A stretch of 64,000 nucleotides of DNA from Klebsormidium nitens (taxonomy: Eukaryota > Plantae > Klebsormidiophyceae), in NCBI GenBank assembly GCA_000708835.1, contig DF237071.1, forward strand, positions 1-64,000, read 5' to 3'. Positions 865-22,400 of the stretch are shown piece by piece. Below the pieces are notes generated by a model. The model worked only from the letters and a program-made list of their open reading frames with translations. It made no database searches and was not told where the DNA came from. Within the stretch, counting starts at the first letter, position 1; every line of letters begins with the position of its first letter. Both the position numbers and the translations under genes were made by a program.

Positions 865-1720
865 GTGGCGGCGTCCGAGAAACACTCGAGAGGAGCGTGA
901 GCGCTGACGTAAGGCCACAGTCCGTTTTCATCATGGCCGCGTTTCGCTAACCAAAAGCTCCAAAAAACGCTACAGCTGATGGTCGCGTCGGAGATGCGAA
1001 TTCAATGAAGAAAGGAGCTTGAGCTAGTGAGCTCACAGTCCTTAAGCTCGTCATGCGCTGAATGAAAGCTGCAAAGAATTTGTGAGTCAGAGAGGACGAC
1101 ACGGTGACCTTAGTGCAAAGGTGAGCTCACAATAAAAAAAAACGTCATGGTCGCGATGCGCTGACAGAAAGCTACAGAGGATTCCAGCAAGTGAATTGTG
1201 GCGTCGGACACAACCGCACGAGACCTGACCGCAAAGGTGAGCTCACAATCCATCAAGTTCGTCATGGCCGCGCTACGCCGACGAAAGCCGCGAAGAACTC
1301 GAGCAAGTAATCGTGGCGTCGAAGAGGACCTGAGCGCAAAGGTGAGCTCACGACCAATCAAACACGTCATGGCCACGCGGCGCCAACCGAAAGCGGATCA
1401 ACAAACCTAGAGCAGGTAGCGGAGGCGTCCGACTACGTGACCAAATCGTCCAATTTCGTCAAGGCCGTGCTGCGCTGATTAAAGGGTTGCAATGGGTACA
1501 GAGCAGGTAGTGCTGGCGTGATAAAAAACGACTGAACATAGAGATTTGAGCACAAGAATGGGCTCACAAACTGTTCTTGTTCATCATGGCCGCGCTGCAA
1601 AACATTGGCAGGCTGCAAAGACACGGAGCAGGTCTTGGTGGCGTCGTAGATGACCTGACGAGAAAAAAGGCATGCGGGCTAAAGCGAGCTCGCAACCGTC
1701 TAAGCTCTTCATGGCCGCCA
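865..1720. repeat. Cluster 1 of ~95-120 bp diverged tandem modules (~8 units)
   Basis: Recurring + strand order GTGGCGTC(G/A)G - variable - TGAGCGCAAAGGTGAGCTCAC - variable - TTCGTCATGGCCGCGCTGCGCTGAC-NGAAAGCTGC-ATTCGAGCAAGT. GTGAGCTCAC occurs at 1027, 1121, 1237 and 1342. Confidence 0.9.
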
Positions 1721-4700
1721 AGTCGGGAGTCTAGGCACATCCATCCAAACGACACGTACAGAGAAAAGACACCTTCTAGTAGTCGCCAAGCCTCACAAGC
1801 CTTGCCTTCAGATAGAACTTCCTGACACGTAGGACAGGCAGCTAAACACGGAAGAGAAGCGAAACCATCTCAAAGAAACAGTACTGCTGGATGTCGAAAC
1901 GACGATGCCTCCAGGAGCAAGGAGGCCCGCGAAATGACCGAGAGAACGTCCCTGGAAAGGAGCGCAACAAGCTGGAAGCGCATTAACAACCCGCAAAGCA
2001 AGCAGCCATACCCCTCGCGCTTTCGAAACAAATAAGGCGTTGACTGGGTTTGCTTGGAAGGACTGGTTGAAGCAAAATGACACGCGGAACGCGACGGCAA
2101 CTTCTCTAAAATTCGAGCCGCGATGACCTCAGCGATTGAAGGCAAGACGAGATGCCAAACGCCATGGGAAGGAGCGCGCGCTGAAGCAGGTAAAAGGACT
2201 TGGTCACCGGGCATGCCTTCATGATGTCTTCGAGCACCTTTTCAAAGGAGAGCTACGCAGCAGATTTCACCAACTGAGCACAACCGGCGGGCAGGAGACG
2301 GGTTAGGACTCTAACCCCTGCAACACTCGCTTTTTTCCGCCTCCAAATAAACGCAGAACAAGAACGCTAACGGCCTAAGCAGACGAAGAGCATCAACGAT
2401 CCACGCAGGAGATACGAAACTCCATCCACGCTGACGGCAGCGTCCTCGTATGGACGACTCTCTGAAATTCATCAAACGCAATATGAAAGAGATTATGAGG
2501 TGGCACGGCTTTTTGACAAAGCTCTAAGCCCAAGCAAAGCGGAATCAGCAAAACAAGCGACCGAGCGGGCTTCGAAAGCTGCCGTAAGAAGTGAAGACTG
2601 AAGCAATAGAACTCGCAATTGATGGCGGCATCATTTCAACCCTCGTGCGGAAAGTGGACACAACAATCTGCCCAGAGAGTTTGAAATCATTGCCGCCACA
2701 AAGAAAAGGAAGCGTTTCGGTATTCGCGAGTGTCCAAAAATGACGAAAAAGACAGAACACTGCCCAAAATCAAACGAGGCTGACCTCAAGGGTTTTGGCA
2801 TGTTTGACATTTTCACGACTAAGCGCCATGTGATACGCAAAGCTCAATGAGTTGCCGTGTGAGGCTGGAGGAAACCAAAGATTGAGCAAAGGCTAGTGTA
2901 GGAGCGCCAAACTCTATTGCGTAGCTCATAAATCCGAGTACAGACTCTACTGGGAAACTAAAGCTCCCAGTTTCTCATCAAGGCCACTGGAATCTCTGTC
3001 TCTTGACATCGACTTTTGAGGGTTGTGCTCCATTCTCCAGATGGCTCAGTAAACCAAGCGGGCGTGCACATGGGCGGTCGTAAGAAAAGCGGGCAAGGAA
3101 GGAAGGGGCGTTTAAACAATTTTTTCTGACCTGAGCCACTGCTTTGGTGACCATTTGGCAGCGGCATCAGAAGACCTTTGAGAAACTAACTTGAGCACAG
3201 TACTGCCCACGAGGATTACCTCTAAGGCCGCTACAAAGCCCACTGCACGTCCATCTTTTAAAGAAGGGCTTAACGAGTCGTGAAGCACACGTTATTGCAT
3301 AAGACGGTCCAGCCAGTGACGACATGTAAGGTCTATCCTCGTTCAAAGGACCAATACGAGCACAACGGGCGAGCACATACTGACCGCGGCGTCAAGCCTT
3401 GCACAAGACAAACGGCAGTACGTGGGTTTCCAGAATGAGCCCAAAGTTTATCATGGCCGCAGTTTCGGCAACAGTGGTCGACGTGTGATCGAAGAGAGTG
3501 ATTTTCACAAGCTGCATGCTCGTATCAGTTTTCCGGTTGCGTCAATCCTTCGCAAATGTCTGCCGGACATACTAACAAGGCGTCACTGCTGGAGTCACCG
3601 AAATAAGAGTAACATTGAGTTGCGCTCGAGTAGTCCCTCCATAAGCGGACCAGCGTCTGTACAAGTCGCCTTCACGGGGTCAAATATTTGAAACACCCGT
3701 CAAAGCCCTCGATTATTATGCACTTCACTGATGAACAGAAGAGACGCGGCGTCAGTTCAAGGCGGCCTGAGCAGCAACCCGGGAGCCTCATCCTAGAGAT
3801 TTCACCGCAGCCGCCACAATGAAAAAGGTTGCAAAGCGGAGGCAGCGTTGTACTGCTCACATGACGCATACCAAGTCGATTACAACGTACATGCAGGGCG
3901 AAACGGTCTCCAAGTGGCAAGGCAGAGCTGATTAAGTAAAGTTTATACTATGGACGCCTCTAGAAAACCAGACTATTCTGAGCACCCTTGCAAACCATAT
4001 GGATCACCCGCGTTCCTTTTTGGCTCTCGGAACATCGCTGACTAGACCTTGCTGCAAGAAGCAAGGCACTATAAGCAGCGGTCGGCCAACCCACGAAAAG
4101 GGTACAATAAGCAAGCTGATGTGGATCAGGATTGGCAACTAGCAGAACTCAAAAGTGCGTATGAGCAGAAAGCACACAAACTTTGGCTATGGAAGCTAAA
4201 ATCCTGGGCTAAACTCATTTTCTGAGATATTTGAGGTGCTCGTCTGCGGCTTGGCCTATCAGAGCGTTCCTTCGATCGAAATGCACACCTGTACATTCCA
4301 ACCCCAGACTGACATTCTTCCGTTCGGTGAACCTGTTGTCCACCTTAGCGACATATCACCTCTCCGAATGGCGGATGCGACGCCACGGGACCCATCAGTG
4401 CCGAAAAAATTACTGCTTACGAAAACCCGCTTAAGCTAAGCTGACCGGCAGGGAGTCTCGGACTGAATAGATGCACTGGAATGTTAGCAAGGGGAACGCG
4501 ATCGGTCAGGTCCACAAGAATTGTGAGGACACCCTTGAAGGATCTAGGGCAGGTGTAACGCAAAGTGTACGACACTTTCTATTGGCCGCGGTCTGGACAG
4601 TAAGCAACCAAAGGAGCCAGACAGTGCCAAGTTTCAAGACCAGTGCACGTAGACCACTGCTATAGTGGCGCCAAAGGCTGGAAAAGTAACTTCGAGACTG

Positions 4701-4869
4701 CTTCGCACTTGTGCCTCACGGCAGGTGACGGCAGCCGCGTCTGGACTTCCTTGTAGCGAGCGCCAAAGCATGTGTGTCCGCTCTCTTGTAAGCGGAAACA
4801 GTCGAGCAAAGATTGCCTGGTCAACGCAAGCGGAGTAGGAGCCACAGCCACGGAGCAGAAAAGAGCAGG

Positions 4870-5670
4870 TAGTGGTGGCGTCCGGACGGAAACGACGACG
4901 TGAGCGCTCACGTGACCTCACAGTCTGAATCATCATGGCCGCGCGGTCAGGAACAGTCAAAGTCTGAGAGGAACGGCACAGGTGATAATGGCCTCGGAGA
5001 TGCAACTTCGAACAGAGAGGAGCTGGAGCTAGTGAGCTCACTATTCGTAACTTCTGGCATGGCCGCGCTGCGCTGACTGAAAGTCACAAAGCATTCGAGC
5101 ACGTAAAAAGGGGCGTCGGAAACGAAGAAAGCGCTGAACGGAGCGCAAATGTGAGCTGACAATAAATGAAGTTCGTCGTGGCCGCGATGCGCTGACAGAA
5201 AGCTGCACAGGTTTCGAGTAAGTAAATCATGGCGTTGGAGAGGATCAAAGCCCAGACCTCAGCTCAAAGGTGAGCTCACAGTCAATCAAGTTCGTCATGG
5301 CCACGGTGCGCCGTCGAAAACTGCGAACGATTTGAGCGGGTGGCAATGGCGTCGACGCCGATGAGACTTCGGTAAGAGACTTGCGCACCAAGTCGTCTAA
5401 GTTCGTCATGGCCGTGCTGCGCTGATTAAAAGATGCATGTTGATACAGCAGCCAGTGCTGGCGTCAGGAGAAAAGCACCGGGCAGAGGAATCTGAGCGGT
5501 GAAGTGAGCCCACGACTTATTCCGGTCCATCGGAGTCATGGCCGCACTGCATGCAGAAAAGTGGCAGGCTGCGAAGGAATGAAGCACATCATGGTGGCGT
5601 CGGAGATGAGCTGACGCGAAATAACATCTGCGGGAAAAGCGAGCCCGCATTGGTCTAAGGTTCTCATGGA
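4870..5670. repeat. Module cluster 2a (~7 units)
   Basis: Same motif order as cluster 1, with the same flanking sequences. Confidence 0.9.
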
Positions 5671-6599
5671 CGCCAGGTTAAGGCACATCCTTGCAAAAGT
5701 TTCGTACTAAGAAAAGGCAGATTCTAGGAAAAACGACGCCTCACGAGGCTTGCATACGATCAAGGAAGAAATTCCTGACGTGTAGGACAAACAGCAAAAC
5801 ACGAAAGAGCAGCGATTCCAACTCATAGCAACGCTACTGCAGACGGAATGTCAAAAGACCATCCATCCAGGAGCGAGGAGGCCCTTGAAACGACCGAGTC
5901 AACGTCCCTGGAAAGAAGCGCCCCAAGCTAAAAGCCCCTTAGCAACCTTAGCTCAACAATGACGCCATCTGTGCTGTATTGGGCAATCATCTCCCAATTT
6001 CACATCAGAGCTACTAAGGTTTTGTCTTGAGATCAACGTAAATCGTGCTCCATTGCCAGAACGCTAGATAAGCAAAGCGAGCCTGCACGTGGGCGGTCGT
6101 ACAAGACGAAGAACGAAGAGGCTTTTGAGAGAACTCGTCTGACATAAGGCCTTGCTCGGGTGCCCGTTCACGGCGGCATCAGTATGAATCCTGAGAGAGT
6201 ATTTGTGTATCTGGACATAGTACTGCCCACGAGGATTGCCTCAAGACCGCTACGATGACTCAAGAGCACCACCCTCGTCATGAGTTGACATTCGCGTATA
6301 CCAGGACGACCTTTTTGAAGCGGCGATGAAAACGTCCACTCTCTGGCAGAAAAGCTTGTGTCCAGTATTGTGTCATCCATTGATGCTGCCATCCACTGCA
6401 AGGTTTTTGGAATTCGCTTCTGATGGCGATTTTAGAAGCTCGCTCGGTTGCTTGTTCCGATGACTCCGCTTTACGCGGACTTCATTGTTTCCGGAAAAAG
6501 GCGTGCCACGTCAAGTGCTTCGAGGTGCTCTTCATTCAAGAGCGTGGCCCACCTTGCGCAGCGTTGAAAGGCATTTGTATTTTACGGAGCAGAAAAGAG

Positions 6600-7495
6600 C
6601 AGGTAGTCGTTGTGTCCGGACGGAAACGACGACGTGAGCTATCAATGACCTCACAATCTATGTTCTTCATGGCCGCGCTGCAAGTATCAAGGTCTGCGAG
6701 GAATGGCACAGCTGACGGTGGCGTCCGAGATGCGGATTTGGACAAGAGAGGACTTTGAGCTAGTGAGCTCACAATCCGTGACCTGGTCATGGCCACGCTG
6801 CGCTGACTGAGTGCTGTAAAGAGATGAGAGAGGAGTGGTGGCGTCGGGAAGGACAACCTGCACGGTGACCTCAGCGCAAAGGTGAGGTCACGATCAATGA
6901 AACGTCATGGCCACGCTGCGCCAGTGACGAATTGTCAAGCATTCGAGCAAGTAAGTTGTGGCATCGGAGAAAACCCCACGAGACCTGAGCGCAAAGGTGA
7001 GCTCACGACACCCAGCTTCGTCATGGCCGCGCTGCGCTGACTATAGTTGGGGAGGATTCCAGGAAATAGATTGTGGCGTCCGTATGGACCCCAGAGACCT
7101 GAGCGCAAAGGTGAGCTAACGATAGAAGTTCATCATGGCCACTCTGCGCCTACGAAAGCTGCAAAACATCCGGGCGTATAGTGGCGGCGTCGATTCCGAC
7201 GACAGTTGGGTGTTATGCGACTCGAAATCGTCCAAGTCTGTCAGAGCCGTGCTGCGCAGATTGACAGCTGCAATCGGTAGGAAGCAGGTAGTGCTGGCGT
7301 CAAGAAAGATCATTGAAGTGAGAACTGAGCGCTAAAGTGAGCTCACAAATTGTTCCCGTTCATCATGGCCGAGCTGCACTTACTCAAAACTGCGGAAGAA
7401 CGGAGCAGGTCATGCGGGCGTCGGAGATGACGGGTGAGAAGATTGCGGGCTAAAACGAGCTCGCAACCGTCTGAGCTCGTCATGGCCGCCAAGTC
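6600..7495. repeat. Module cluster 2b (~8 units)
   Basis: Same motif order. It follows an inverted junction segment at ~6280-6545. Confidence 0.9.
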
Positions 7496-8671
7496 GGGAG
7501 TCTAGGCACATACTCGCCAAAGACCCGGACAGAGAATGGCACTTCTAGAAAACGCCAAGCCTCACAAGCATCTCGTTCAATAAAAGTTTCCCTGACGTGT
7601 AGGGCAGGCAGCAAAACACGATAAATCAGCAAATCAATCTCATAGCAACGCTACTGCAGAAGAGGAATGTCCAAAAAGACCAGGCATTCTAGAGCAGGAG
7701 GCCCGTGAATGACCGAGACAACGTCCCTGGAAAGGAGCGCCCCAAGCTGAAAGCGTCTTAGCAGCTCGCAAAGCAAGCAGCCGTAAAGCCTCGCGCTTTC
7801 AAAAGCAGGAACAGTGCAGGCGTTGACCGGGATTGCTGGAAGGTCAGGGTGACGAAACTAACACGAGGAACGCAACGGTGAGATTGAGCAAAGGCTAGGA
7901 ACGCCAACCTTTGCTAAGTAGCTCAAAGATGGACGCCATCTGTACTGGGCAATTTAAAGCTCCCGGTTTCACATCACGGCTAGTAAACGTTTGTCTTGAC
8001 AACGACGTGAAATTTGGGCTTCATGGCCGGAACGCTGAGAGAAAAAAAAGCGCCTGCAGGTTGGCCGTACATAATAGGAAAAAAACGCCTAACCTAGGAA
8101 CCGACCGTTTGATAGCAGCATTCCAACGAACCATGGATGTACTGTCGTAGTTGAGCACGATTCTGCCCACGAGGATAGCCTCAGAGCCGCTGCAAAGACT
8201 TGAGTGCACATGCTTTCCAGTCAGGCCAAGCGAGTCATGAAGCACATACATGACGGCTGAAAAGGTCCAGACAGTCACGAAGTGCAAGGTCTCTCCTGAT
8301 TTACAAGACCAACACGAGCACAAACGGCGAGTACGTACTGACTGCGGCGTCAAGCCTTGATCAGAAGAGGGAATGGCATTGGGTTCCTAGAAGGAGCCCA
8401 TTAATTATCATGGCCGCAGTTTTGACAACGGAAGAGGTTTGACACAGTGGTCGAAATGCACATTGCTGATCGAAAACAGTGATTGTCACAAGCTGCATGC
8501 TCGTATCAACTCCCAAGTTGGGTCAATCCTTCGGAAAGTTTGCTGGACATACGACAAAGCTTGCTACGGAGTCTCGTCACTGCTGGAAGTCACTGAGATA
8601 AAATTGAGATGCGCTCGAGTAGTCCCTCCATAAGCGGACCTGCGTTCATGCAAAAGGCTGTACAAGTCGCC

Positions 8672-9045
8672 CAGGGGGACCAAACGCCAGCCAAAACCCG
8701 TGGAACCATGTTCCGAGCCGTCCGATGAGAATTGTCCCTTCCTGGACGGTCAAGATTGCGTATTTGCGTCTCCCGAGCACCGATGTGGTCCTCGATTGGT
8801 CAGAGGAGAGGGTTATCTAGATGGTTAGAAGCTGGTTACCTAATAAATGCCTGTCGATTCAACCATAACCAGCCCCTTACTCCTCGTAAACGGCGTGTTG
8901 CCCGGACACAAAAAGGTAGGGGTTTGAAGCTGACCCTTTGGAGGTCTAATCCCACCATTGCCCGGTTCCGGACAACACGCCGTTTGCCTTCTGGAACATG
9001 GATCCAGGTTGCATGGAAGTTTGCCTGGGGTGTTTGGTCCCCCTG
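8672..9045. mobile_element. Non-autonomous hAT-type MITE, 374 bp
   Basis: Perfect 14-bp TIR CAGGGGGACCAAAC/GTTTGGTCCCCCTG and 8-bp TSD AAGTCGCC (8664-8671 and 9046-9053). The paralogous empty site with a single AAGTCGCC is at ~3663-3670. There is an internal inverted repeat AAACGGCGTGTTGCCCGGA (~8888) / TCCGGACAACACGCCGTTT (~8966). Confidence 0.9.
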
Positions 9046-9414
9046 AAGTCGCCTCCACGGCGTCAAAAACTTGCGCATCTGTCAAAGCCCTCGATTACAT
9101 TATGCAGTTCATTGGTGACCAGACGAGACGCGGGGTCCGGACAGCAAGCAACTAAGGGAGCCAGACAAATGCCAAGCTTCAAGACCAACCCACGTAGACC
9201 ACTGCGAAGTATCTGCAATAGTGGCAAGGGCTAAAGAAAGCACCCGAGAGACTGCTTAGCACTTGTGCTTTGCGGCAACGCCGGCGGTCACGTTTGCGCT
9301 TCCTTGTCGCCGAGCTTAGATGCATGTTCGCCCGCTCTACCGAAACCGGAAACAATCAAGCAAAAAGTTGCCCGGTCAATGCAAACGGGGTCAAAATCGC
9401 AGAAGAATGAAGCA

Positions 9415-10155
9415 GGTAGTGGTTGCGTCCGGATGCAGTAACGACATGTGCGCTCATATGAGCTCACAGTCTATGTTCATCATTGCCGCCATGCGGTAAC
9501 TGAGAGCTGCGAGAAATCGAACAGTTGATGGTGGCGTCGGAGCTCAACGAAATGAGGAGCTTGAGCTAGCGAGCTCGCAATCCGTAAGTTCGTCATGGCC
9601 ACGATGTGCTGACAAAACCTGCAAAGGATTCGAGCAAGTAATCCTAGATTGGAGAGAAACAAAAGGGAAACCTGAACGCAAAGGTGAGCTCACGATAATT
9701 CAGGCTGACTGATAGTTGCGAAGATTCGAGCAAGTAGTCATGGCGTTGGAGAAGACCGCATGACAACTGAGCCCAAAGGTGAGCTCACAATCAATCAAAT
9801 TCGTCACGACCACGCTCGCCAAAAGCTGCAAAGCATTCATGGGTACTATTCCTGTCGAGACCGTGGGTGTCATAAGACCTGAAGTCGTCTAAAGTCGTCG
9901 AGCTTGTGCTGCGCTGATTAGAAGCGACAATTTTGAAAGTGCAACTGCTGACGTCAGGAAAAAGCACCGGACAAGAAGTTTGAGCACTGAAGTGAGGCCA
10001 CGACTGTTCCGATTCATCGTCATTACCGAGCTCCATTGCTTAAGAGTTGCGAAAGACTAAAGCAGGTCAAGGGGCGTCGGAGATGAGTGGTGAGAAAGGG
10101 GAAAATGCGGGCTAAAACGAGCTCGCAACCTTCTATGCTTGTCATGGCCGCCAAG
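9415..10155. repeat. Module cluster 3 (~7 units)
   Basis: Same motif order and the same downstream flank (CCAAGTCGGGAG...GGCACAT). Confidence 0.88.
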
Positions 10156-13100
10156 TCGGGAGTTTCGGCACATAATTGCCAACGACACGTACAAAGAAAA
10201 GGCACCTTCTGGTACACGTCAAGCCTCACTAGCCTTGCATTCAAGAAAACGGATTTCATGACGCGCGGTGCTGGCAGCAAGATACGAAAGAGCAGCAAAT
10301 CCATCTCAAAGCAACACTACTGCAGACACAGGATGCAACAAAACCATACATCCAGAGCGAGGAGGCCTTTGTTGAATTGACCGAGACAAGGTCCCCAAAA
10401 AGGAGCGCCTCAATACAAAACCCCCTTAGCAACCCGCAAAGCAAGCAGCCGTAACCCTGGCGCTTCCGAAACCAGAAACAAGTATAGGCGTCGACCTGAT
10501 TGGTCGGTAAGGACAGGACGACCCAAATGACTTACACAACGGTGAATTTTTCGAATATCGAACCGCCATCAACTAGGTGGATATTCGGGAGACAGAAGCA
10601 GTAGATGACACGGAGTAGCGGTGATTGAAGCAAGTAATCGACCTTGGGCAGTGCACAAGCCTCGAATATGGACGACATCCTCGGCACTTTTCTAAACAAA
10701 GTAAATGCGAATCATTCTGCTCACAAAGGACTGAGCATAACCGGTGGGCAGGAGACACTGGGCAAGCACTCGTCGTCACCCCGCTCGTCTTACTTTCATC
10801 TGCCTTTGTAGTAAAGCTCAGATGAAAAACGCCTACGAAGATTGATGAAGTTTCACGCACCGAGACAGTTGGAGGTCTCCTAACGGAGTTTGAAGCGTTC
10901 TTGCATTGGCCCCTGATCTGACTCAGTGAGCGACTTGGAATGCAATGACGTGGCACGGCTCGTTTGCGGGCCTGTGAAACCAAGCGAAGCGGAAGCGGGC
11001 AAAACGAGCAAGCGAGCTTTAAAGCTTGCCGGATGGTACAGCGAAGGCACTAACTTGCAGTTGGTGGCGGCATCAGGTACGCAACGAATTCTGAGCACAA
11101 AAGCTGCCCAAAAGGGTGATGCTTTCATCGCCGCCACAAAGAGAAGCGTCCTGGGATATGTGAGTGTCAAACAAGGGTGTACGGCTGAGCACAAAAGTTG
11201 AACGCCGTCGGAGAAACGTTTGAAAAGGAGGGTGACCTTATGGTTTCTGGCATGATGTAAACAGAAACGAACGATGTGCGAGACGGACCTCTGTAAGTGC
11301 CCACATCGTGCTACAAGAGTTCAAAATAGGAGCAGCAGGACGTGGGAACGTGCAGGGTCTGCGGTTTTGCTCTTGACTTTGCATTTAGGCCAGTTTTCAC
11401 TAGCAAGCCTCCGTATGTCTTCACGGCCAACACGATGTTTCGGAGGAAGAATCGCGTTCAAGGATTGCTTCAATTGCCACACCGCTAAAACAAAAGTGGG
11501 CGCGGGCGCTCGTAAGCAAAGCGGGCTTGAAAGCAGGGCTTCTCAAACTAAACATCATAGCGAGGCAAATCTTGGGTGACCGTTTGAGAGCGGCGTCAGA
11601 CAGGTGGAATTTGGGGCCCTGGCGAATGTGGAGCACTATTTGTATGCCCAGGAGGATTACCTCAAGACCGCCACGAAATTTATTGAACTTTGGTCAGAGG
11701 TTAAGGCTAAGCGATTCGAAGAAGCGAAAGAACGCGATACAAAAAGCTGTCGTGGTCCTTGGAAGAGCAATCAAACACATTTGCAACGGCTGAGAGGCCA
11801 TAGCCGCGGCGGCATCAACACTTTTGAGTCAAGGAGGTGGGCAATTGGCCTCAAAAATCGACCCATCAACTCTCATAGCCGCAACGTCAGCCACACGAGC
11901 CAGGCTGACAACGACCCATCAACAACATCATCAAGCACGAAGCAGACAAGTGCAGCGTCAGAGTTGAGTTCAAAGAAGCGTGGGCACTTAAACATGAGCC
12001 CACATCAAGAAGTCTCGCCACAGTCCCGATGGTGACTCGTAAACCATTATTGAAAGGTGGTACATGCGGTAGTGGCGAAGAAGCATCATTTTTCCAAGCA
12101 GGTGTTTAGAATCGCCACGAGGCCAGGAGAAGCGAATATTTACGGCACCGAAAGACAAAGCAACAAAATAGATACGTTTGACGCGTGCGCGTTTAAGCGT
12201 TTCCAAGCATGGGGGCTCCACGTATGCTTCCGATCGGTATGAATCTAGCAAAACCTCTCTTCCTTGAGAATGCACGCGAGTGCTGGCCCTGTCTGAAGGG
12301 ATCTGTGAAGTTGGAATGGGGTATCTCTCACTCGCACCTGCATTTCTGCACAGTCTGCAGGGTCATTAAAGGATCGTGGCCACCTATGAGTAATTTGTAT
12401 TCTTTCGTTAAGAGGCACGTAGCGTAGAATGATGCAAGGTGGCCTGAAAGATGACCCCGAAGCATTTAAACTGACGATGTTTGAATCTGGACCCGTTTTT
12501 CCAGTGAGTATAGACTTTAGTTAGCATGCCCAGGCAGTCTGACAGAGAGTCTGTCTGATAACCAACTTTTACTTCCGTGTTGCATTCAGATCTGCCTTCA
12601 AACCCCTCCAGTCAATCGCAAAATCTATACCGCAGATAAAGAAACGCATGCCAGCCAAATAATAAGCCAGGAACAGCTTGAAGCAGCTCAAGAAGAGGTG
12701 GGCAAGCGGCCACTACCAATCCTCAAGAGACGGGCAAGCGGCCACTACCAGTCCTAAATAGTGCTGAAGTCAGAGTTTTGGCTTCGTGTCCGACTCAGAA
12801 GCAGTGGGCCCGTTCAGACTCAGTTTCCAAATCGTGGCCATTATGACATCCGCGATGCACAATCCTCTTTCAAGCCCCAAAAACAATGGCACCAAGAAAA
12901 GAAATATTAGAGCTGTCGGCCACACGAAGGATTGGACGACTACAGACAAATCATGCTGAAGCGACACTGTGACCGGAAAGCACGACCAAGCAGCTCGTGG
13001 GTAGATTCGCATCGACAAACCACGTTGTAAAACGAGCGTGGCTCTCAGAAACATCTGGAATACATGTGGGCACATTGATAGCCCTTTGTAACATCATAGC

Positions 13101-14232
13101 CAGTACTTAAACGCCCAAGCGTGCTTTCGATAGAAGATAGGTAGAGGCTGATGAACTTCAACGACTGCGATATGAACCAAACCTCTAGGCCTTCTTGAGA
13201 GCTCAGCCGCCGACGGCCACAAGAAGAGTTTCGGAAACTTAGCCAACTAGTGTCTATGCGCAAAAGAGAAACGCAGTAGGACCAGTGATTAAGAGACTGT
13301 TGCTTCAAAAGCTTTCCTTGACATCAGACTCAGCCCGGAATCTTTCAAAAGCGGAGGACTGATTCTGGAACCAAGTACACCACGCTTAGAGAGGGCCACG
13401 TCCTTTACACAGCCCCAATTCCGCACTTTGTTTGCGCCAAGCGAGACGGTTGATAGCCATTGTTCGGTGGTCGTGAGGCCAAAGTACGAACATTCTGGAG
13501 GTATGCAGGGCACCACAGTATATACATCTGCAATCGCTCCAACAAATGTTGCGAGGTGCTCGAGACAGCCTGAGCCTACAGGGAAATTAGAAGGTCGCGA
13601 AAATGTTGCGAGAAAAACGCCCTCAACGTCAGGTACCAGAACAAAGAAAATCAAGGCTTGGACATTGATATTTTAGAGCTACATCATAGCCGCTTCTTAT
13701 CATAGTCACTGAAGGTTTTGGCAGCAGGGTGCATGGATGGCGCGAAACAGACTCACAAGAGGAGACGTCAAAGGTCTCTAATACCAAGGATTGAACCACG
13801 AGAGCGCTATTCAAAGCGGACTAGGCCGCGGCTGCTCCAGAAGTGGGCCGATCGAAAAAGAAGACATTTGGAGGGAAGTCATACCAACAAGAAAACATGG
13901 CATTCTTACGACGGGAGCTTATGGGACTCGCACATCGGATTTCAGTCTAAAGAATGCACAAGCACGTTCACAAAGTACCGGCTGCTCTCTGATTCTTCCC
14001 AGCATGAAAGGTGAGCCATTTGCAGAAATTTTGTAATTCAATCAAAGGTTTCAGGTCAGACAAGTCTACAGTGCACTCACACAGATCCGACAAGGTCAAA
14101 AGCATGCAAAAACGTCCGCCGTTCCAAGTGCTCTGACCGGCGGAGAATGTTTCTAAAGATGGCAAAAAATTGATCCACAGTGAAATCAGGTTTTACAATA
14201 AAGGCGAAGAAGAAGCAATTCACCGCACTTAC

Positions 14233-14574
14233 ACGAGAAATATGGCGCCAAACGCGATGTGCAGGCACCGCTCAAAGTGCTCCGGCCGGCGCATGCTCCT
14301 CCGCAACGACGGCAGGCCCGCGTGTCCCGACAGCGACACGATCATGATCCCCGCCCCGGTTGGTAACGACGCGGCTTTTACGAACGTGTGCTGATGCGCG
14401 CCGGTCCCGGTTACTTGCGCCGAGTCGGGGTCCAATAGGAGCGCGCCCACGACGACAGCTGTCCACAGAAGACTGGACGAGACGCCGGAGATGGCAATGC
14501 CGGTGAGGCGGGAGAAGCCGCGGACCCAGATGGAGGGGAGGACGGCGGCCAGGCTGCCGAGAATCAAGGAGTGC
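14233..14574 (-). CDS. Intact duplicate of AVT1-like exon 3 (paralogue exon or alternative cassette)
   Basis: Same length (342 nt) and same phase as 28886-29227, with an open frame, a GTAAGT donor and a weak AAG acceptor. Manual codon alignment gives 20 synonymous and 5 non-synonymous codon differences. Confidence 0.8.
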
Positions 14575-16082
14575 CTTTGGGAAGATACTGACCCGAATCC
14601 TCGCAGAACCGGACTACCGGGGAAAGCCTTGGAATCAACTTTGGGGGCAAAAGGAGTCTTGCAAATCTGTGCTTTGTCGATCTGCTGGTCTACGGGCATG
14701 GTGTGATCTCGCCCGACATCAGAGTGATCCTCGTAGTCGCAGTGCGTCTCGAACGCAGGCATCAAAAGGCTCCTCACGGTCCGGCTTGAGAAAGTGACTC
14801 CTATGGGTCCTCGATTCGCAATTGCTGAGGCAAGCTTGGTACACGCTTCTGCTCAGACAAACGTGGCTAAGAGTAACAAAAGTCCATAATGGCAAGCAAC
14901 GCAGGGGCAGGCTACCGTGACGTGCACCTCCTTTCCTATTCAAGGAAGGTGCATATTGATCTTCTGGGCCCGCATTATTTTCAGGGGGGGGAAAAGTACA
15001 AACCAGAAAGAAGCCGCACAACCGGTAAAGCAATGCCATACTTCAAAAAGATGGCGTCGGGAAAGTATCTGGTCACTTGAGCAAGAAGCTCTTCGTGTTC
15101 CGCTCACTCAGCGACCAACGCCCACACGGGCTTGACAAATTCCCCAAGAAAGGGGTCAAAGGCGCCCAATACTCTCTTTTGCGGACCGTGTAAGAAGCGA
15201 CAATTCGAATTTATCAGCATTTTTTTGGATGCCATGAAAATGTCAAAGCAAGAGAGGTATGTCAAACCAACGTACTGCATGCGTTCGAACTGTTAATCAC
15301 CAGGATGGACAACTTCGTCATCAGCGGGTAACCTGCTTGTACTGATGAGCAGATTGCTCGACAGCTCATACCCTCATAGCCTTTCTTCTTTCGGAAACAT
15401 CTCCTTATGGCCGTTTCGGAAGCCGTCTGATTGCGCGACGAGAGGAAGCAAGTACGTTACCTCGGATGAACTGCATACCCAAACAGAGTAGGCAACGACT
15501 ATAGCTAATGAAGGCACACGCGCTTATCCAGGTTTTATTCAACCTGCGAAGCTGATGCAAAACAACAAATTTACGCCGCTTTGAGAAACTCTGTTTATAC
15601 GCAGACGTACCAGGAGACGTCCTCGTTACAGCTCCTTATATCAGCCCCCAACCAACGACTTTCGAAAAGTCGATGGAGAAGTGTCCCAGGATCCGGTTGA
15701 AAAGAGCGTACCACCCTCAACCATGACGTCAGGGAGTACCGCCTCGCATCAATCTTTGAGCAAACAAGCCCAATGATGCAATATCGCCCATCATGGCCAC
15801 ACTACACTAGAGTAATGCTTGATTCCAGAGAGCAAGATGGATCATTCAGGGCTAGCTTACAAAAATCGAGCAGGCAAGAAATGCAAGCGGGACGCACGTT
15901 CTCCTAAAGACCCCAGCACAAGCGGTGGTAAAGCTGAGTGCTCGGAACGAAACAGGTACATTCGATTGCGGGCCTGGTTCGTATTTTTTTCCGCGGAAGC
16001 GGAAATTGTCACGAGCAAAATCGAGCTTTGATGCTGGCAGCCTCGTCTTGACGATACATAAAAGCCGCCAAGCATGACAACG

Positions 16083-16136
16083 TACCTACTACAAAGCTAC
16101 CTACAAAGCTACCTACAAAGCTACCTACTACAAAGC
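16083..16136. repeat. Minisatellite (TACC[TAC]TACAAAGC) x4
   Basis: Directly visible 12/15-bp tandem units. Confidence 0.9.
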
Positions 16137-16704
16137 TTTTCAAGGCCCTAGTCAAAGCGACTGCACCTTTTGAACGATATCAGATTGGCAAGTCCACAAA
16201 TAGTACGCGGCTTCTGGGACTATCATGACAACGCTGGCCTTGTCTCTCCGGACAAAGGGCGCGACCCAGATTCGTCATAGCCGCACTTCAATTCCAGTGA
16301 GAATCAAGAGAATCTATTGAAACCAAGGACGGGTCCTTTCATTGTGCAGATCCACAGCGGAAATTGCAGCATGCGCACCGAGTTTGTGGTATCCAAACGT
16401 GGAAAAAAGGATTGACCTCACGCAAGACGGCTAATTCCTTGCATGCTCTCAAAGACGTGGCATCCGTGGGAACGTACCCGAATACGCTGAGCAACGCCAG
16501 TACTCGAGAGTGCCCATCTTCATAGCCCGTTTACAATCCTGTTCGCCTACAAACGAATTTAGTAAAACCACCCAAGCTTCAACCAGAATAGTTCGTTGTG
16601 TCTGAGATCTCTCCGTTGTAAACAGCAAGCCACGCGAGGCTTATGATGCCATTCTGGCATAATCTACAATCTCGAGTAAGAATTCTACAAGATTGAACAA
16701 GGTA

Positions 16705-16724
16705 NNNNNNNNNNNNNNNNNNNN
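16705..16724. other. Assembly gap (20 N)
   Basis: Run of N; the true size is unknown. Confidence 1.
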
Positions 16725-16995
16725 ACAATCCGACCATGAAAGCGGGATTATTTATGCTGATTCCGATCACAATCCGAACGCCCTATGTCCTCTCTTGGAC
16801 AGGGAGTTTTAGGCCCATTCTGGCAGTTTTGGAGCTTCCGAGGACCATTCCGGAATTAATTAACCTTTCCGAATTTCCACTTTCCGAACGAGAAATCCGA
16901 ATTTCTGACTTTCCGAATGCAAATAATTATTTATTTATTCGGAATCATTTCCTTGGACTACGGTATTACCAGGTCTTTGGTGCCTTCGATTCCTG
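16725..16995. mobile_element. Probable transposon end with subterminal (A/T)TCCGA repeats
   Basis: AT-rich segment that differs in composition from its flanks, abuts the gap, and carries about 8 copies of TTCCGA/ATCCGA. No TIR partner or TSD is visible. Confidence 0.35.
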
Positions 16996-19482
16996 AAAAG
17001 AAGCTCGAAGCGCTCGCCCTGTCGAAAAGGAACACGGTAGACTGACCAGACTCCCACGCTCGACAGCAACTGAAGCACGGTTTAGACATGAGAGAACTCC
17101 CGCTAAACGGCCTGGCTGTGGAGGAAACAAATCAATGACGATCTAGATTCATGGGCTGAAACGAGGTACAGCTGCTAACGACACCGCCTGCCTGGCGCCT
17201 CGGTACGGCTGAAGATTCACTCCCTACCCCTCGACTCACAATCTCTTTTGCATCAGCCGAGCCGGAACAAAAGGGACAGAAACGATTGGAGGCTGAGAGG
17301 GGATCAGATGACGAATCCGTTCCCCCCGCAAATGGCCCCACTTTGATGAAGAACCTATGCAATTCGTGCTAGAAGAAGCGGGTTCGTGTCAATTGACAGG
17401 CTGCAAGGTAGTAGAGCATGAGTGGGACGAATCAAGGGGCCTTGAGAATACATGAGTGCAAACAATGCATGACCGGGGCAACATGGTTTCGAAGTGCTAT
17501 CCAACCATGTCAGCAAACAGTGACGTCTCAGGAGACGCAACAAGCTTCAAAACGGAAAAGAGGGTGACCAGAACTGAAGGATAATGATTCCAGAGACGGA
17601 AGATCGTCTTTCGGCCCGAGAACTTCACGGTCGCAATTAAGTTCACGAGAACTGAAGCAGTGAGCAGAGACAACTCATTGAGTCCTCATCCTTTCATTGC
17701 CGCCGTTCCTCAAAGAATCTCCGAAAAACCAGAGAGCTCCGCGCGCACCCTTTGCACCTGTGTCATGCTCCAATAAGATCAACCAATCAGCCAACTTAAG
17801 ACAAGCCTTCATAGCACGTCCCTATTCGTCAAACCCGAAAGGGACGATCCCAAGCACATGCGCAGAGGCGCAAAAGCTGCAACCAACGATGGGGTTACCT
17901 TTCAAATTAAAAGAATATTGCAAGGTGACAACGATTTCAAGAACAGGTCACGGTCGGAGTGCACATCAAAGGCTGTTCCTTGCTGACCCGTGTCGACACG
18001 GAGCATACACTGTTGCTAAGTAAACGCTCTCGTCCTGAGGCCTCGTCAGCACCACTGACTCTTAAAGAGCACTCAATGTGTTTCCAGAGCCTCTCCTTCT
18101 GGGCTTGCAAATGCATTTCTGAAGGTAAGGCAGTAATGACGGGCCATGCGGCGTGAAACCGATAGCGGGGTGAGCAGCGTAAGCAACATAATGGTCAGAA
18201 TCGCAACCGTACTTTTGAGTGTTGAACCGCATTGAAAATATGTATTCGTGAAGAGTCTCCCCTGGCCCTGAGCAGACTGCTCGCGATGGCTGCAATCTAC
18301 TGACCCTCTTTGTGACCTGCTCTATGGAGACGCCGTTCCGTACCAACTCAAGAAGCTTCGTATGACCATGAACTTCCAATCCCGTCAGCGGTTTTGAGAC
18401 CTGTAAAAAATCGCGGCGAAGCAGCTGCGCAAATGTCTAATGCACATTACAAAAAGACCGGACGCCTGCCTTGCAAGTGGCTCAAAAGCCAAAGTACGAT
18501 GTATAAGCTCTCTAAGCTCATCGAACTCATCACAGCCATGAAAGTTGAAAGCTCTCACAGGCTTGCTCCTGAAAGGTTGATAGATTTTCAGTCCAAAAGC
18601 CCTTCACGTCCGACCGAGGCAGAGAACCAAAAATACGATCCGTTCAAAGCCGGCTCTAGATCAGGCTGAGAGACACGTGACCTTTGGTTGGAAAGGGAAA
18701 AGGTGGCTCCCGGCGGCCATCACAAGTTGCCACAGCCGAACACTAACGGCTACAGACATGCCACATGAACAATTCTGAAGCTCCTCTGATGTTAAGAACA
18801 TCCAGAAACCGCCACAAAGTCACTTTTGCATAGAACTCAAAGTACGGGCATCAGCCTCGTAACATTTGATAACTACCGAGAAACGCTAGTAGTTTGGAAA
18901 CGTCGTAGCCACCCCTCGAGTGATCCGGAAGGCGTGAATAATCAAGTGCCTTGCCAAATCAGGAGCGGAATTTTGTCATAAGAAGCATAAAGTCAAGTGA
19001 ACATATTTGAGCAATAAGAGTCTATACTCTTGAAAGGCTGCAAACGGCACACTCTAGAATGCAGCGACGTATTTCGTGAGCAGACCCGTGAAAGGTAATC
19101 CCATTGGTACTCCCATCGAAGCAGACAGAAGACCCCACATTTATGTTGGATCGAAGCAGATCGGACCTTTTCCTTTCCCAAAGGTGCTATAAGTGCTAGC
19201 TCAAGTTGAAAGCAGTCTGAAGACGCGGTCAAGCAAAAGCCGCCACACTCCTCGAACTCAGACGACGGGCTTGAGTCCGGAAGTAGCTCAAATGATAAGG
19301 TAACAAGCACCTGCTTCGGCAGATCAAGAACGGCATACAGGAAGTGCATGCATGATGAAATGTCCCCACCTGTTGAAAAAACCGAGTCGAAAATTCGTGA
19401 AACTAATGGTGCTCTTCGAAGCACGTCTTTGAATGGTTGGTTCCGATCAAATGACTGTCGAAATCGCGAATTGAGAACTGAT

Positions 19483-22400
19483 TCAAGACGGCGGAAGGTA
19501 ACCGGGCGCTTTTGTCCTTCTGAGCTTCTCGACGTCTATCACTCCGATGAACACCGCACAAGCTGCCCCTACGCACACCAGCGCAGCTACTAGAGTCCGT
19601 TGCCGCAAACCCATCTCGTTCCGGTGCAACCTGCAGAGACAAGGAGACCGACTTAGAGCTTGTCGATTATCTAGATACCAAACAAAAACCGAGCGGAGTC
19701 ACGCAGTCACTTGGAGAACCATCGAAAGACGACACTGCTCGGAAAGGGATCAAATGCAGATAAGGGCTGTCGCCAGGACTACAGAAGATTGGTATTGGAG
19801 CCCGTCCCATGATAGCCTGAAGTTCGATCCTAGTCATTTAGTACCTGTCCTGCTTGAGAGCTAAGTTAATCGATCCGTAAGGAAGCCAAGATTGCCGCAT
19901 GACTCTGCACGACTCAAACAGAATTTTAGAATACCCCGAAGCTGGCGCTCTTGGCCCAAGTTGGCCACTTATTTAGACTTACCAACTGCGAATAGGGACA
20001 AACCCGCGCATTAGCGCTGATCGCCGCTGCTTGGGCCCTTTCAAAATGCAGAAAACAAGGCAAACACATCCCTCGCACGCCGTAGAAGATAACGAGAAGC
20101 GGAAGTGTGCCTCCTCACAGGTTCTAAAATACAGTTGGCAGCCGCTAGAAGGCGCGAACACTCTTCGCAGAACTTGACCACGACAAAGACCGGACTAGTG
20201 TCACATGTAATCGAGGAGCTTGGCAGCAGCAGCGAGAAGCGAACTTTTCAGATTTTGACCCTGCCAAGTCTCACGAGCAAAGCGGACACGTGGCATCCAC
20301 AAGGGGTACATGACCCTTGGCAGCAGCGGGGGAGGCCCCGTGATTGCGAGCTTCCGAAGTATCATGATCTTTCAAAAGCGGCCACGTGGCATTCACGCCT
20401 GTAGAAGATACCTGGCAGCAGCAGCAGGGAAGACCCCCATGCTTGCAACTCTTCCTCAATCTCCGACAAACTTTGCAAAAGCTGACACGTGGCACTCACA
20501 CGTAGTAGAAGACACCTGGCAGCAGCAGCGAGGAGCACATGCTGGCCACTCCGCCCACGAGCGACTCCACGTAGCCCAGCACGTCGTACGCCACCACGGA
20601 CACCGCGTACGCCACGCCCAGGACCACTGTCCGCAAACAACGCTCCACGATCGCTGCAACAGGGCAAAGAAAGCTCCTTTTTAAGAGAGGGCATACTTCA
20701 AGGGCATCTTAGACTGGTTGGGTTGAAGTACCCGAAAACACACACGGATCGCGGATGTCATTGGCAAAACCAGCGTCCGCAAAGACCGCTCCACCGCTGT
20801 ACGCCAGCTGCGAGTTTCTTTCGGAGAGTGATTTCGACATTTAGAAATGTTGCCGGCAGAGTCCATAAGAACTGATAGTCAAAATCGTCGTATGTCAACA
20901 TGAAACAAGAATAGGACAGAGCCCGCCGAAGATAACCTGACTCGCGCGCTTTTGCTGGCGTGTACGCCATGTCAGTGGTGAGCTCTGCAATACGAACCAT
21001 AGTAGAGAGGGCGTAGGGGGTCAAAGGTTTGCTATGATTTCGACTGGAGCGGACTAGGAAGTCTGCAACAGACTCGCATGAGTGTTTCGATGTGTTGCAG
21101 GCCAATCGAGGGTCCGAGCTTCCGTGTTCCTCGAGCCGCCAAGTCGCGTCTTTTTCATAAAGCGTAAGGAGACCTGAAGAGAGGAGAAACAACCGCTGTA
21201 GAAGCGGTAGATCGAAGGAACAGGCAATCAAAGCGAAGGGGACGGTGAACGAAAGACAGAACAGTCGACCGTACCCGACGCAAACACTTTCCGGTTCCTG
21301 TGCGACATATCAACAGGTAAGTTCCGCCAAAGCAGACACGAGCGGCAAAATCCTCAAGCAGGCGTGAAAACCTTTACTATGATGATGAAAACAAATTGGG
21401 TAACAATTTGAACCACCTCCAGGAATCCAACGTTTGACGTTCTCAGCTCGTTACCTGATGCGCGCGCTTTCGTGGTCCCCTGCGCCATGTCGATGATAAG
21501 CTCCGCGAGCACGAACACGAGCGGCGAGATCGTGGAGAAGGAACTGAGCGCAACTAGAGCGGAGAGCAGCTGCGAGAGGCTGATCTCGAACGCGCCCAAC
21601 TTGAGAAGCTTCCACCCCGCGACAGAGGAAGAAGTTGCCAGATTGTGGGTGACGAGAACGGAACAGCTTTCACCGAAGTACTGATAAGCGGCGGCGCCCA
21701 TTAGAGCGTACCTGCAGGGAAAAGCAAGGTCCTGAATAGAAAAATCTTGCTTGGCTTTTGAGCCTTACTGATGTTCCAAACTGCAATCCTGTGAAGCAAG
21801 AATTTGGGTGTAAGTTTCTTTTTCTCCGCGGAGGAACCCAATGTTGCCAGACAATCAGCGACGTCACATGAGCAGCATTTGCTGAACTACTGTCATGCGG
21901 CAGCTGTCATCAGCGCGTATCGTCAAAGAATCAGAATTTCTACCTTCAGATTTCAATAGAGCTTAGGAACCTGACAAAAGCTGGCGACGGAAGCTGACGT
22001 GGCAAAGTAGTTTGCGGCAAGTAGAGGCCAGAGCTCAAGCAAGCCGCGGCGCCCAGCAAAGCTTATTTGCGCGGCATGCAGAGAAGCTGCTTCTTACAAT
22101 CTGCTTGTTTTTAGAGCGCACCAACCTACGAATGGGTTGAGTCTCACATCTCGCTGAAACAGCCTCAACGGTGCTAGATTGCGTGAATTGAGCAACAAGA
22201 AATGATTTAGCTTTTGTCAGAGTTATGCTAAGCTACGGCAGCTAACAAGGGCGTTCACGTGTTCGATGACCATGCTTGCTTTCGCTTTTAAAAACCGCAC
22301 TTTTGCGTGGTTCAGGACTGGTGTGCGGCAGGAAACAGCAATTGCGTATGAGCAAAGAGCACACGGGCTTTGGCTATGAGGGACACAAACCCGAACTCGC

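Follow-up and report, generated by a model that had tools for sequence, protein, structure and literature searches.

We have identified, in a 64,000 nt stretch (the window) of contig DF237071.1 from the Klebsormidium nitens assembly GCA_000708835.1, a family of short structured units comprising 37 array units of 92–130 bp in five clusters and some 17 scattered relatives; every one of them lies on the minus strand. K. nitens is an early-branching relative of land plants. The family is real, selected and strand-specific, and is best filed with the orphan box C/D small nucleolar RNA (snoRNA)-type genes that occur in intronic polycistronic clusters, although with non-canonical boxes. We consider it probable that the units are genes, together with some dead copies, for lineage-specific orphan box C/D-like (kink-turn) small RNAs processed from the introns of amino-acid transporter (Aa_trans) host genes. 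The predicted RNAs would be ~70–90 nt long and would derive from the sense strand of long introns in two tandem Aa_trans genes.

The array is a higher-order repeat. In the cluster alignment all clusters show 7–8 unit types in the common order H-G-F-(E)-D-C-B-A, read along the minus strand, where the letters of unit types are separate from those of clusters A–E. Cluster A (864–1720) has eight tandem units (H, G, F, E, D, C, B, A), of which unit B lacks the 5′ stem and unit C the 3′ stem; cluster B (4871–5675) has seven (H, G, F, D, C, B, A) and cluster C (6605–7491) eight (H, G, F, E, D, C, B, A). Seven tandem units make up cluster D (9418–10153), with units F and C degenerate or 5′-truncated, and a further seven make up cluster E (23047–23841), which lies between two Aa_trans exons. 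The repeat unit is ~119 bp, with linkers of 35–45 nt between units, and the clusters are embedded in duplicated segments of 1.4–2 kb with ~69–72% identity, which include several hundred bases of homologous non-unit flank on either side. Because type order and flanks are shared, we conclude that a unit of ~119 bp was tandemly duplicated first, and that a whole cluster with its flanks was then copied five-fold. With copies diverged by 25–45%, Tandem Repeats Finder detected no more than two short stretches with a period of 119. A first-pass annotation, made from the letters alone, had described a hierarchical array of ~110-bp modules with conserved ends and a number of diverged outliers; the hierarchy is confirmed, and the outliers are real members of the same superfamily, to which additional ones have now been added.

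The strand bias is pronounced. A profile for nhmmer, built from copies anchored on the word GGCCATGA, gave 40 matches, 40 of 40 on the minus strand, and the word itself occurs 30 times on that strand and never on the other. A covariance model recovered 36 array units with E-values from 1e-16 to 1e-3, and the scattered units more weakly; its sole plus-strand match was weak (E 1.4) and overlaps a minus-strand unit. On the minus strand, the window is T-rich over its first 38 kb. Protein coding was rejected, since unit lengths vary between 92 and 130 bp and the open reading frames (ORFs) of the array have neither relatives nor a Pfam match, which bears out the earlier view of the array as non-coding. 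Transfer RNA was likewise rejected, as ARAGORN found none.

Read on the minus strand, the array consensus is GYGGCC-AUGAYGA-(~12 nt)-GUGAGCUCAC..GCGCUCAGG-(variable)-YCCGA-C-GCCAC. The best-kept columns are GGCCAU, GA, GA, G.G.GCUC and GAC-GCC, and the D-like GA keeps its A in 36 of 36 units. Array and scattered units have in common an internal hairpin, UGRGC-loop-GCUCA. The AUGA columns of the C-like box are 0.83–0.89 identical; as a whole this box reads AUGACGA in most array units, AUGAUGA in unit types A and G, and GUGAUGA or GUGACGA in the related algae considered below. A CUGA D box is found within the arrays in type G alone, and also in many scattered units. The terminal stem and the RUGA..GA core support the box C/D RNA layout proposed at first pass. 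At the third pair of the box helix we counted C.C 17 times, U.U 5 times and U.G 4 times, which suggests coupled change; the AUGACGA/CCGA pairing that had been noticed as putting C.C in place of U.U is indeed the commonest combination (17 of 35 units). The conserved core, consisting of a terminal stem of 5–9 bp, the UGA of the 5′ box and the GA of the 3′ box, would provide a kink-turn with its tandem G.A pairs. The linkers (e.g. 6917–6953) carry the half-conserved words CUACCUGCUC, UUUGCAGC and UCAGUCAGCGCAGC, of which UUUGCAGC resembles a 3′ splice site.

We then compared rates of change within the units, using seven unit types with five orthologous copies each and taking the minority-state fraction per site as the measure. 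Core positions (the GGC/GCC of the stem, UGA and GA) had been chosen beforehand on the kink-turn model. Their minority-state fraction was 0.074 (27/367), as against 0.20 in both flanks, where the expectation matched for base composition was 0.195. The core had therefore changed ~2.7 times less often than the flanks (Fisher p about 1e-10), and this constraint is spread over all seven unit types rather than confined to one. Intermediate values were obtained for the hairpin region (0.13–0.14); the variable parts gave 0.21–0.28 and the segment before the D-like box 0.277. The variance across columns was larger than in all 300 uniform-rate simulations. In a neutral satellite, all positions of the monomer are expected to decay at the rate of the surrounding DNA, at odds with the difference between core and flanks; nor do the motifs diverge as fast as the spacers, the outcome that the first-pass annotation had singled out as damaging to its proposal, since the linkers gave 0.216. 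Judged by these comparisons, selection keeps the putative protein-binding ends of the units, that is, the stem and the box core.

The terminal stems provide indications of an RNA fold. Among 13 subfamilies, three of them from related algae, the stems of 5–9 bp differ in sequence yet stay complementary; cognate partners form 78 bp in total, a value reached in none of 20,000 partner permutations. At least 4 bp is looked for in the terminal stem of a box C/D snoRNA, and the scattered units and the relatives have element-specific stems of 5–9 bp. The stem of the array units is weaker, with three G-C pairs and an outer pair around a frequent C.A mismatch. In a model-fitted alignment, 74.7% of cells pair, against 31–54% when the partner is slid, and the covariation score is 0.155 against a shuffled value of 0.097, figures to be read with the leaning of such an alignment towards its model in mind. 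Within the arrays alone, aligned with MAFFT, covariation is weak and RNAalifold kept just a 3-bp palindrome. The covariation suggested earlier as a check is thus weak inside the arrays but clear across subfamilies and related algae.

We also considered CpG decay as the cause of seemingly compensatory changes, such as GUGAGCUCAC to GCGAGCUCGC, and the third outer stem pair of the X-type scattered units, which is U-A in the copy at 8334–8422, U.G at 3461 and C-G at 27450. It was dropped as a general explanation because CpG sites in the flanks are not faster than other sites; single sites may still reflect CpG decay. As to strand, the G.U pairs of the hairpin and of the scattered-unit stems fall on the minus strand, and the UGA and GA words exist on the minus strand alone. 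Boxes, G.U pairs and the orientation of the host genes all point to the minus strand as the presumptive RNA strand. The second stem pair of the array units (e.g. 1194–1273) is never U.G, the sole strand indicator that points to the plus strand.

The scattered units follow the array plan, also on the minus strand, but their stems are longer and perfect and they often have a true CUGA. The X type, at 3375–3465 with copies at 8334–8422 and 27370–27454, has an 8-bp terminal stem (ACUGCGGC/GCCGCGGU), AUGAUAA and UUGA. The unit with the most canonical box C/D look lies at 28110–28186, where the stem GAGCGGC/GCCGCUU adjoins the boxes and is accompanied by an AUGAUGU C box, an internal CUGA and a D-like UUGA. 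Stems of 8 bp are also present at 11055–11137 (GUGGCGGC/GCCGCCAC, with AUGAAAG and CUGA) and at 2621–2698 (GUGGCGGC/GCCGCCAU, with AUGAUUU and AUGA), and a 7-bp stem, AUGCGGC/GCCGCAU, at 33011–33085 with GUGACGA and CAGA. The unit at 11588–11676 combines a UUGAGG box and CUGA with a 6-bp stem that includes G.U pairs, and that at 3154–3233, copied at 25362–25440, has the stem AGCGGC/GCCGCU and CUGA. AUGAUGU and CUGA occur together in the short unit at 13038–13107 (stem UGGCU/AGCCA) and in that at 13622–13698 (weak stem), and AUGAUGG and CUGA at 15719–15805, where the stem GUGGC/GUCAU contains G.U pairs; a degenerate copy of the last lies at 31668–31750. Weak covariance-model matches at 11954–12029 and 16230–16286 are possible degenerate units.

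Minus-strand open frames in the window match Aa_trans (PF01490). Host exons, which were searched one by one rather than joined into a spliced model, lie at 28885–29250 (profile positions 121–240) and, downstream of cluster E, at 21457–21721, the latter with 88–90% amino acid identity to the gene of the related algae; further exons at 20494–20658 and 19511–19642 align to the same gene, and the open frame at 36588–36944 contains an exon matching profile positions 39–123. Since the exons at 28885–29250 and 21457–21721 flank cluster E and several single units, these lie in a 7.2-kb intron on its sense strand. Cluster E thus presents several sense-strand units within one host-gene intron, as do the clusters of plants and green algae. 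The claim made at first pass, that the minus strand is the sense strand of a host transporter intron, is supported: all copies are in the sense orientation, and cluster E stands between two Aa_trans exons.

A second copy of the Aa_trans exon, 94% identical in amino acids and 90.6% in nucleotides to 28885–29250, lies at 14232–14585, with clusters D to A downstream of it. These clusters probably occupy the homologous intron of a tandem Aa_trans paralogue; we infer this placement from the first gene and from the related algae, because the next exon lies outside the window. No paralogous exon other than 14232–14585 was detectable in the window, and this copy could represent either a tandem paralogue whose 5′ exon has diverged or is hidden by an assembly gap, or a partial duplicate. 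The assembly has a run of 20 N at 16705–16724. At 36950–37266 a 137-bp tandem repeat, in 2.3 copies, repeats the 5′ part of the open frame 36588–36944, and tblastn placed partial copies of that exon at 37044–37172 and 37166–37270. Upstream of the transporter genes lies a helicase gene, with a plus-strand open frame at 45220–45642 containing a Helicase_C domain (E 4e-12).

With the exon region 21357–21764 as query, two proteins with 88–90% identity were found in the Joint Genome Institute (JGI) samples 3300060285 (contigs L001 and L226) and 3300060284 (contigs L002 and L227). Both relatives have the same tandem Aa_trans genes, with exon DNA ~80% identical to that of K. nitens. Between their introns and the window blastn gave no alignment, exon segments alone being aligned, and no arrays were found when these were looked for in the relatives' contigs. 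The covariance model detected single sense-strand units in the same intron of both: at 8383, 12436 and 17353 of L227, within an intron spanning 3454–18378; at 9377 of L001, which is the same unit as L226 16232–16300; and at 2098 and 5807 of L226. The relatives' unit reads GUGGC-A-GUGAYGA ... UGGGC-loop-GCUCA ... CCGA-C-GCCAC, with the CCGA box and the extra base that follows it as in K. nitens. The orthologous pair L001 9377 and L002 8967 shows full identity over 20 nt at the 5′ end and 16 nt at the 3′ end; the segment before the D-like box is unalignable, in an intron otherwise ~84% identical. A second orthologous pair shows changes in both boxes.

Because single units occupy the same intron in the relatives, the family predates the split of the three taxa and stays in this intron; because the relatives have single units and no arrays, the K. 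nitens arrays reflect a later, lineage-specific tandem amplification. The search for syntenic arrays in related genomes that had been recommended therefore yielded no arrays but did yield single homologous units in the same intron. The repeated segments that carry the relatives' units recur every 4–5 kb in the intron (L227 12235–12963 and 17200–17600; L001 474–1246 and 9205–9615), and the flank words that they share include GACGAACA..GCCTTTCG and TTGGGTTTGCTGGACGT. The relatives' intron has grown by same-orientation segmental duplication.

The variable segments had been described as guide-like; we searched them for targets. The ribosomal RNA (rRNA) used was that of a plant ribosomal DNA (rDNA) contig, L037, a contaminant in a leaf-symbiont assembly and not K. 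nitens' own, with 18S at 846–2655, 5.8S at 2853–3008 and 25S at 3236–6623. Guide-anchored duplexes with these three RNAs had a mean best length of 10.2 bp, compared with 10.3 and 9.5 bp for decoys. Free matches of at least 10 nt to the same rRNA numbered 23 versus 13, and none adjoins a box. Inside the window, the variable segments had no more antisense matches than controls. The guide-like character is thus unsupported: change in the segment before the D-like box is as fast as in the flanks or faster, without excess complementarity to this rRNA or to the window. Since the would-be guides are unconserved and lack an rRNA match, guiding conserved rRNA methylation is probably not what these RNAs do.

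A metagenome scan with the unit pattern gave at least 120 single, random-looking matches in unrelated contigs, of which none among the matches listed was confirmed by the profile. More than 100 bacterial and archaeal assemblies (L003–L105) carry contigs with a eukaryotic 18S 3′ end, which is contaminant rDNA; the two examined here, L037 and a second contig, L005, are rDNA of plant size (internal transcribed spacers of ~200 nt, large-subunit rRNA of 3388 nt) in leaf-nodule Burkholderia assemblies. Nothing was found when the 18S pattern was searched for in viral contigs.

Several observations weigh against reading the units as small RNA genes. The D-like box of array units is mostly CCGA, CGGA or UCGA (or CCAA), with GA alone kept, and in most members this GA is set off from the stem by one additional nucleotide (C or U), so that the kink-turn would be without canonical geometry; the canonical register, with the stem directly after the D-box A and a 3-nt bulge, is found at 28110–28186 alone. 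At the second stem pair, 21 of 32 array units have a C.A mismatch, which would be G.U on the opposite strand. About 6–8 of the 37 array units are visibly broken by deletions in stem or box. In the uniform-rate simulations the number of highly conserved columns observed, 11, was not exceptional (simulated mean 6.6, maximum 15). In the related algae, the units are part of repeated segments of 0.4–0.7 kb that are 84–88% conserved between the two relatives, and there the unit is no better kept than its flanks. Rfam gave no match at the gathering score, those at E 5–10 being at chance level, on the wrong strand or to unrelated families, and exact look-ups of two array ORFs in the assembly index returned no record. 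Finally, the folding energy of array units is not better than that of shuffled sequences (z from −2.6 to +1.3). Box C/D RNAs usually give little thermodynamic signal, and for this reason its absence is not strong evidence either way.

Many of these features would be shared by arrays of mostly dead copies, in which one ancestral intronic snoRNA-like gene was functional and the arrays are a pseudogene satellite that yields no stable RNA or has few working copies. The broken units, the non-canonical boxes and C.A mismatch of most others and the folding z-scores near zero would all fit such a history, as would the single units of the relatives and the flank-like rate at which linkers and variable parts evolve. 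We nevertheless think this unlikely, because the reduced change of the core after cluster duplication, seen in all seven unit types, is unexpected of neutral pseudogenes. The units might instead act in cis on the pre-mRNA, where Snu13 or other L7Ae-type proteins bound to their kink-turn-like cores and hairpin would affect the splicing, folding or stability of a long intron, or might be protein-binding satellite boxes at the level of DNA. In all three taxa the units occupy the same intron, which is very long (7–15 kb, as compared with ~1 kb for its neighbours), what is conserved in them amounts to short words that hardly call for a guide, and the half-conserved linker words are splice-signal-like (e.g. 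UUUGCAG). However, the element-specific complementary stems with G.U pairs indicate an RNA fold that closes each unit separately, and the linkers overall evolve at the flank rate; we regard a cis-acting role as improbable.

Least credible to us is an origin from a mobile element, be it a short interspersed element (SINE), a miniature inverted-repeat transposable element (MITE) or a transposon with internal tandem repeats, whose inverted ends arose by chance. In its favour, units and flanks are repeated many times, and the units of the relatives lie within repeated segments. Against it, all copies have a single orientation over 38 kb in the window and ~45 kb in contigs of the relatives; long terminal inverted repeats are absent, as is a transposase from the open frames that were tested, target-site duplications not having been searched for; and the copies are tandem, in register and in the same order in each cluster, as local unequal crossing-over produces.

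We therefore retain the interpretation of the units as orphan box C/D-like RNA genes with some dead copies. For such genes, the host intron or a read-through transcript would serve as a polycistronic precursor, as for the intronic snoRNA clusters of plants and Chlamydomonas. Snu13-type and Nop56/58–fibrillarin-type proteins would then bind the kink-turn and block exonucleases, so that each unit would emerge from the spliced intron as one small ribonucleoprotein and the linkers would be broken down. The role of these particles may rest on the protein-bound core and hairpin, or on fast-changing targets other than rRNA. A bolder version of the latter, in which the hypervariable segment is the working part and supplies fast-evolving guides, for 2′-O-methylation or other targeting, to non-ribosomal RNAs such as transposon or messenger RNA transcripts, seems to us very unlikely. 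Were it true, tandem amplification would be a source of new specificities, and the box C/D scaffold would be put to a use undescribed in plants or algae.

The mammalian SNORD115 and SNORD116 families comprise dozens of tandem, near-identical orphan box C/D units that have no rRNA target, lie in the introns of a long transcript and arose by lineage-specific amplification. Each of their units has an intron to itself, between small non-coding exons, and their boxes are canonical. The K. nitens arrays differ in having 7–8 units per intron of a protein-coding gene, separated by linkers of 35–45 nt; the likeness lies in the tandem, orphan and lineage-specific nature of the arrays. If the units are expressed, they would offer a system like SNORD115/116 in a tractable alga with single-copy ancestors in sister taxa, which could show how orphan snoRNA arrays originate and what role the box C/D scaffold has without a conserved guide, and would test snoRNP assembly with a CCGA box, a C.C pair and a one-base insertion. 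If they are not expressed, they are a snoRNA-derived intronic satellite of modest interest.

PMC7671301, citing Chen et al. (2008, Genetics 179:21), describes the snoRNA genes of plants and Chlamydomonas as intronic polycistronic clusters with many isoforms. The clusters of plants and Chlamydomonas reinhardtii resemble those of K. nitens in having head-to-tail units on the sense strand of a host intron, isoforms that arise by local duplication and short, uninformative linkers (PMC7671301). They differ in that their C/D boxes are mostly canonical and their guides serve known rRNA or small nuclear RNA (snRNA) sites. In K. nitens, by contrast, most D-like boxes are CCGA, the positions of the would-be guides are free to drift, the search for an rRNA complement found none, and a higher-order tandem repeat has arisen by amplification of one unit type. 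Orphan snoRNAs of Ostreococcus tauri (PMC7671301) and Arabidopsis (PMC2875012) are similarly of box C/D type, have no predicted rRNA or snRNA target and are restricted to a narrow lineage. Those orphans were detected through their expression and come mostly from single genes, whereas the K. nitens units were recognized from their sequence and are present at very high copy number.

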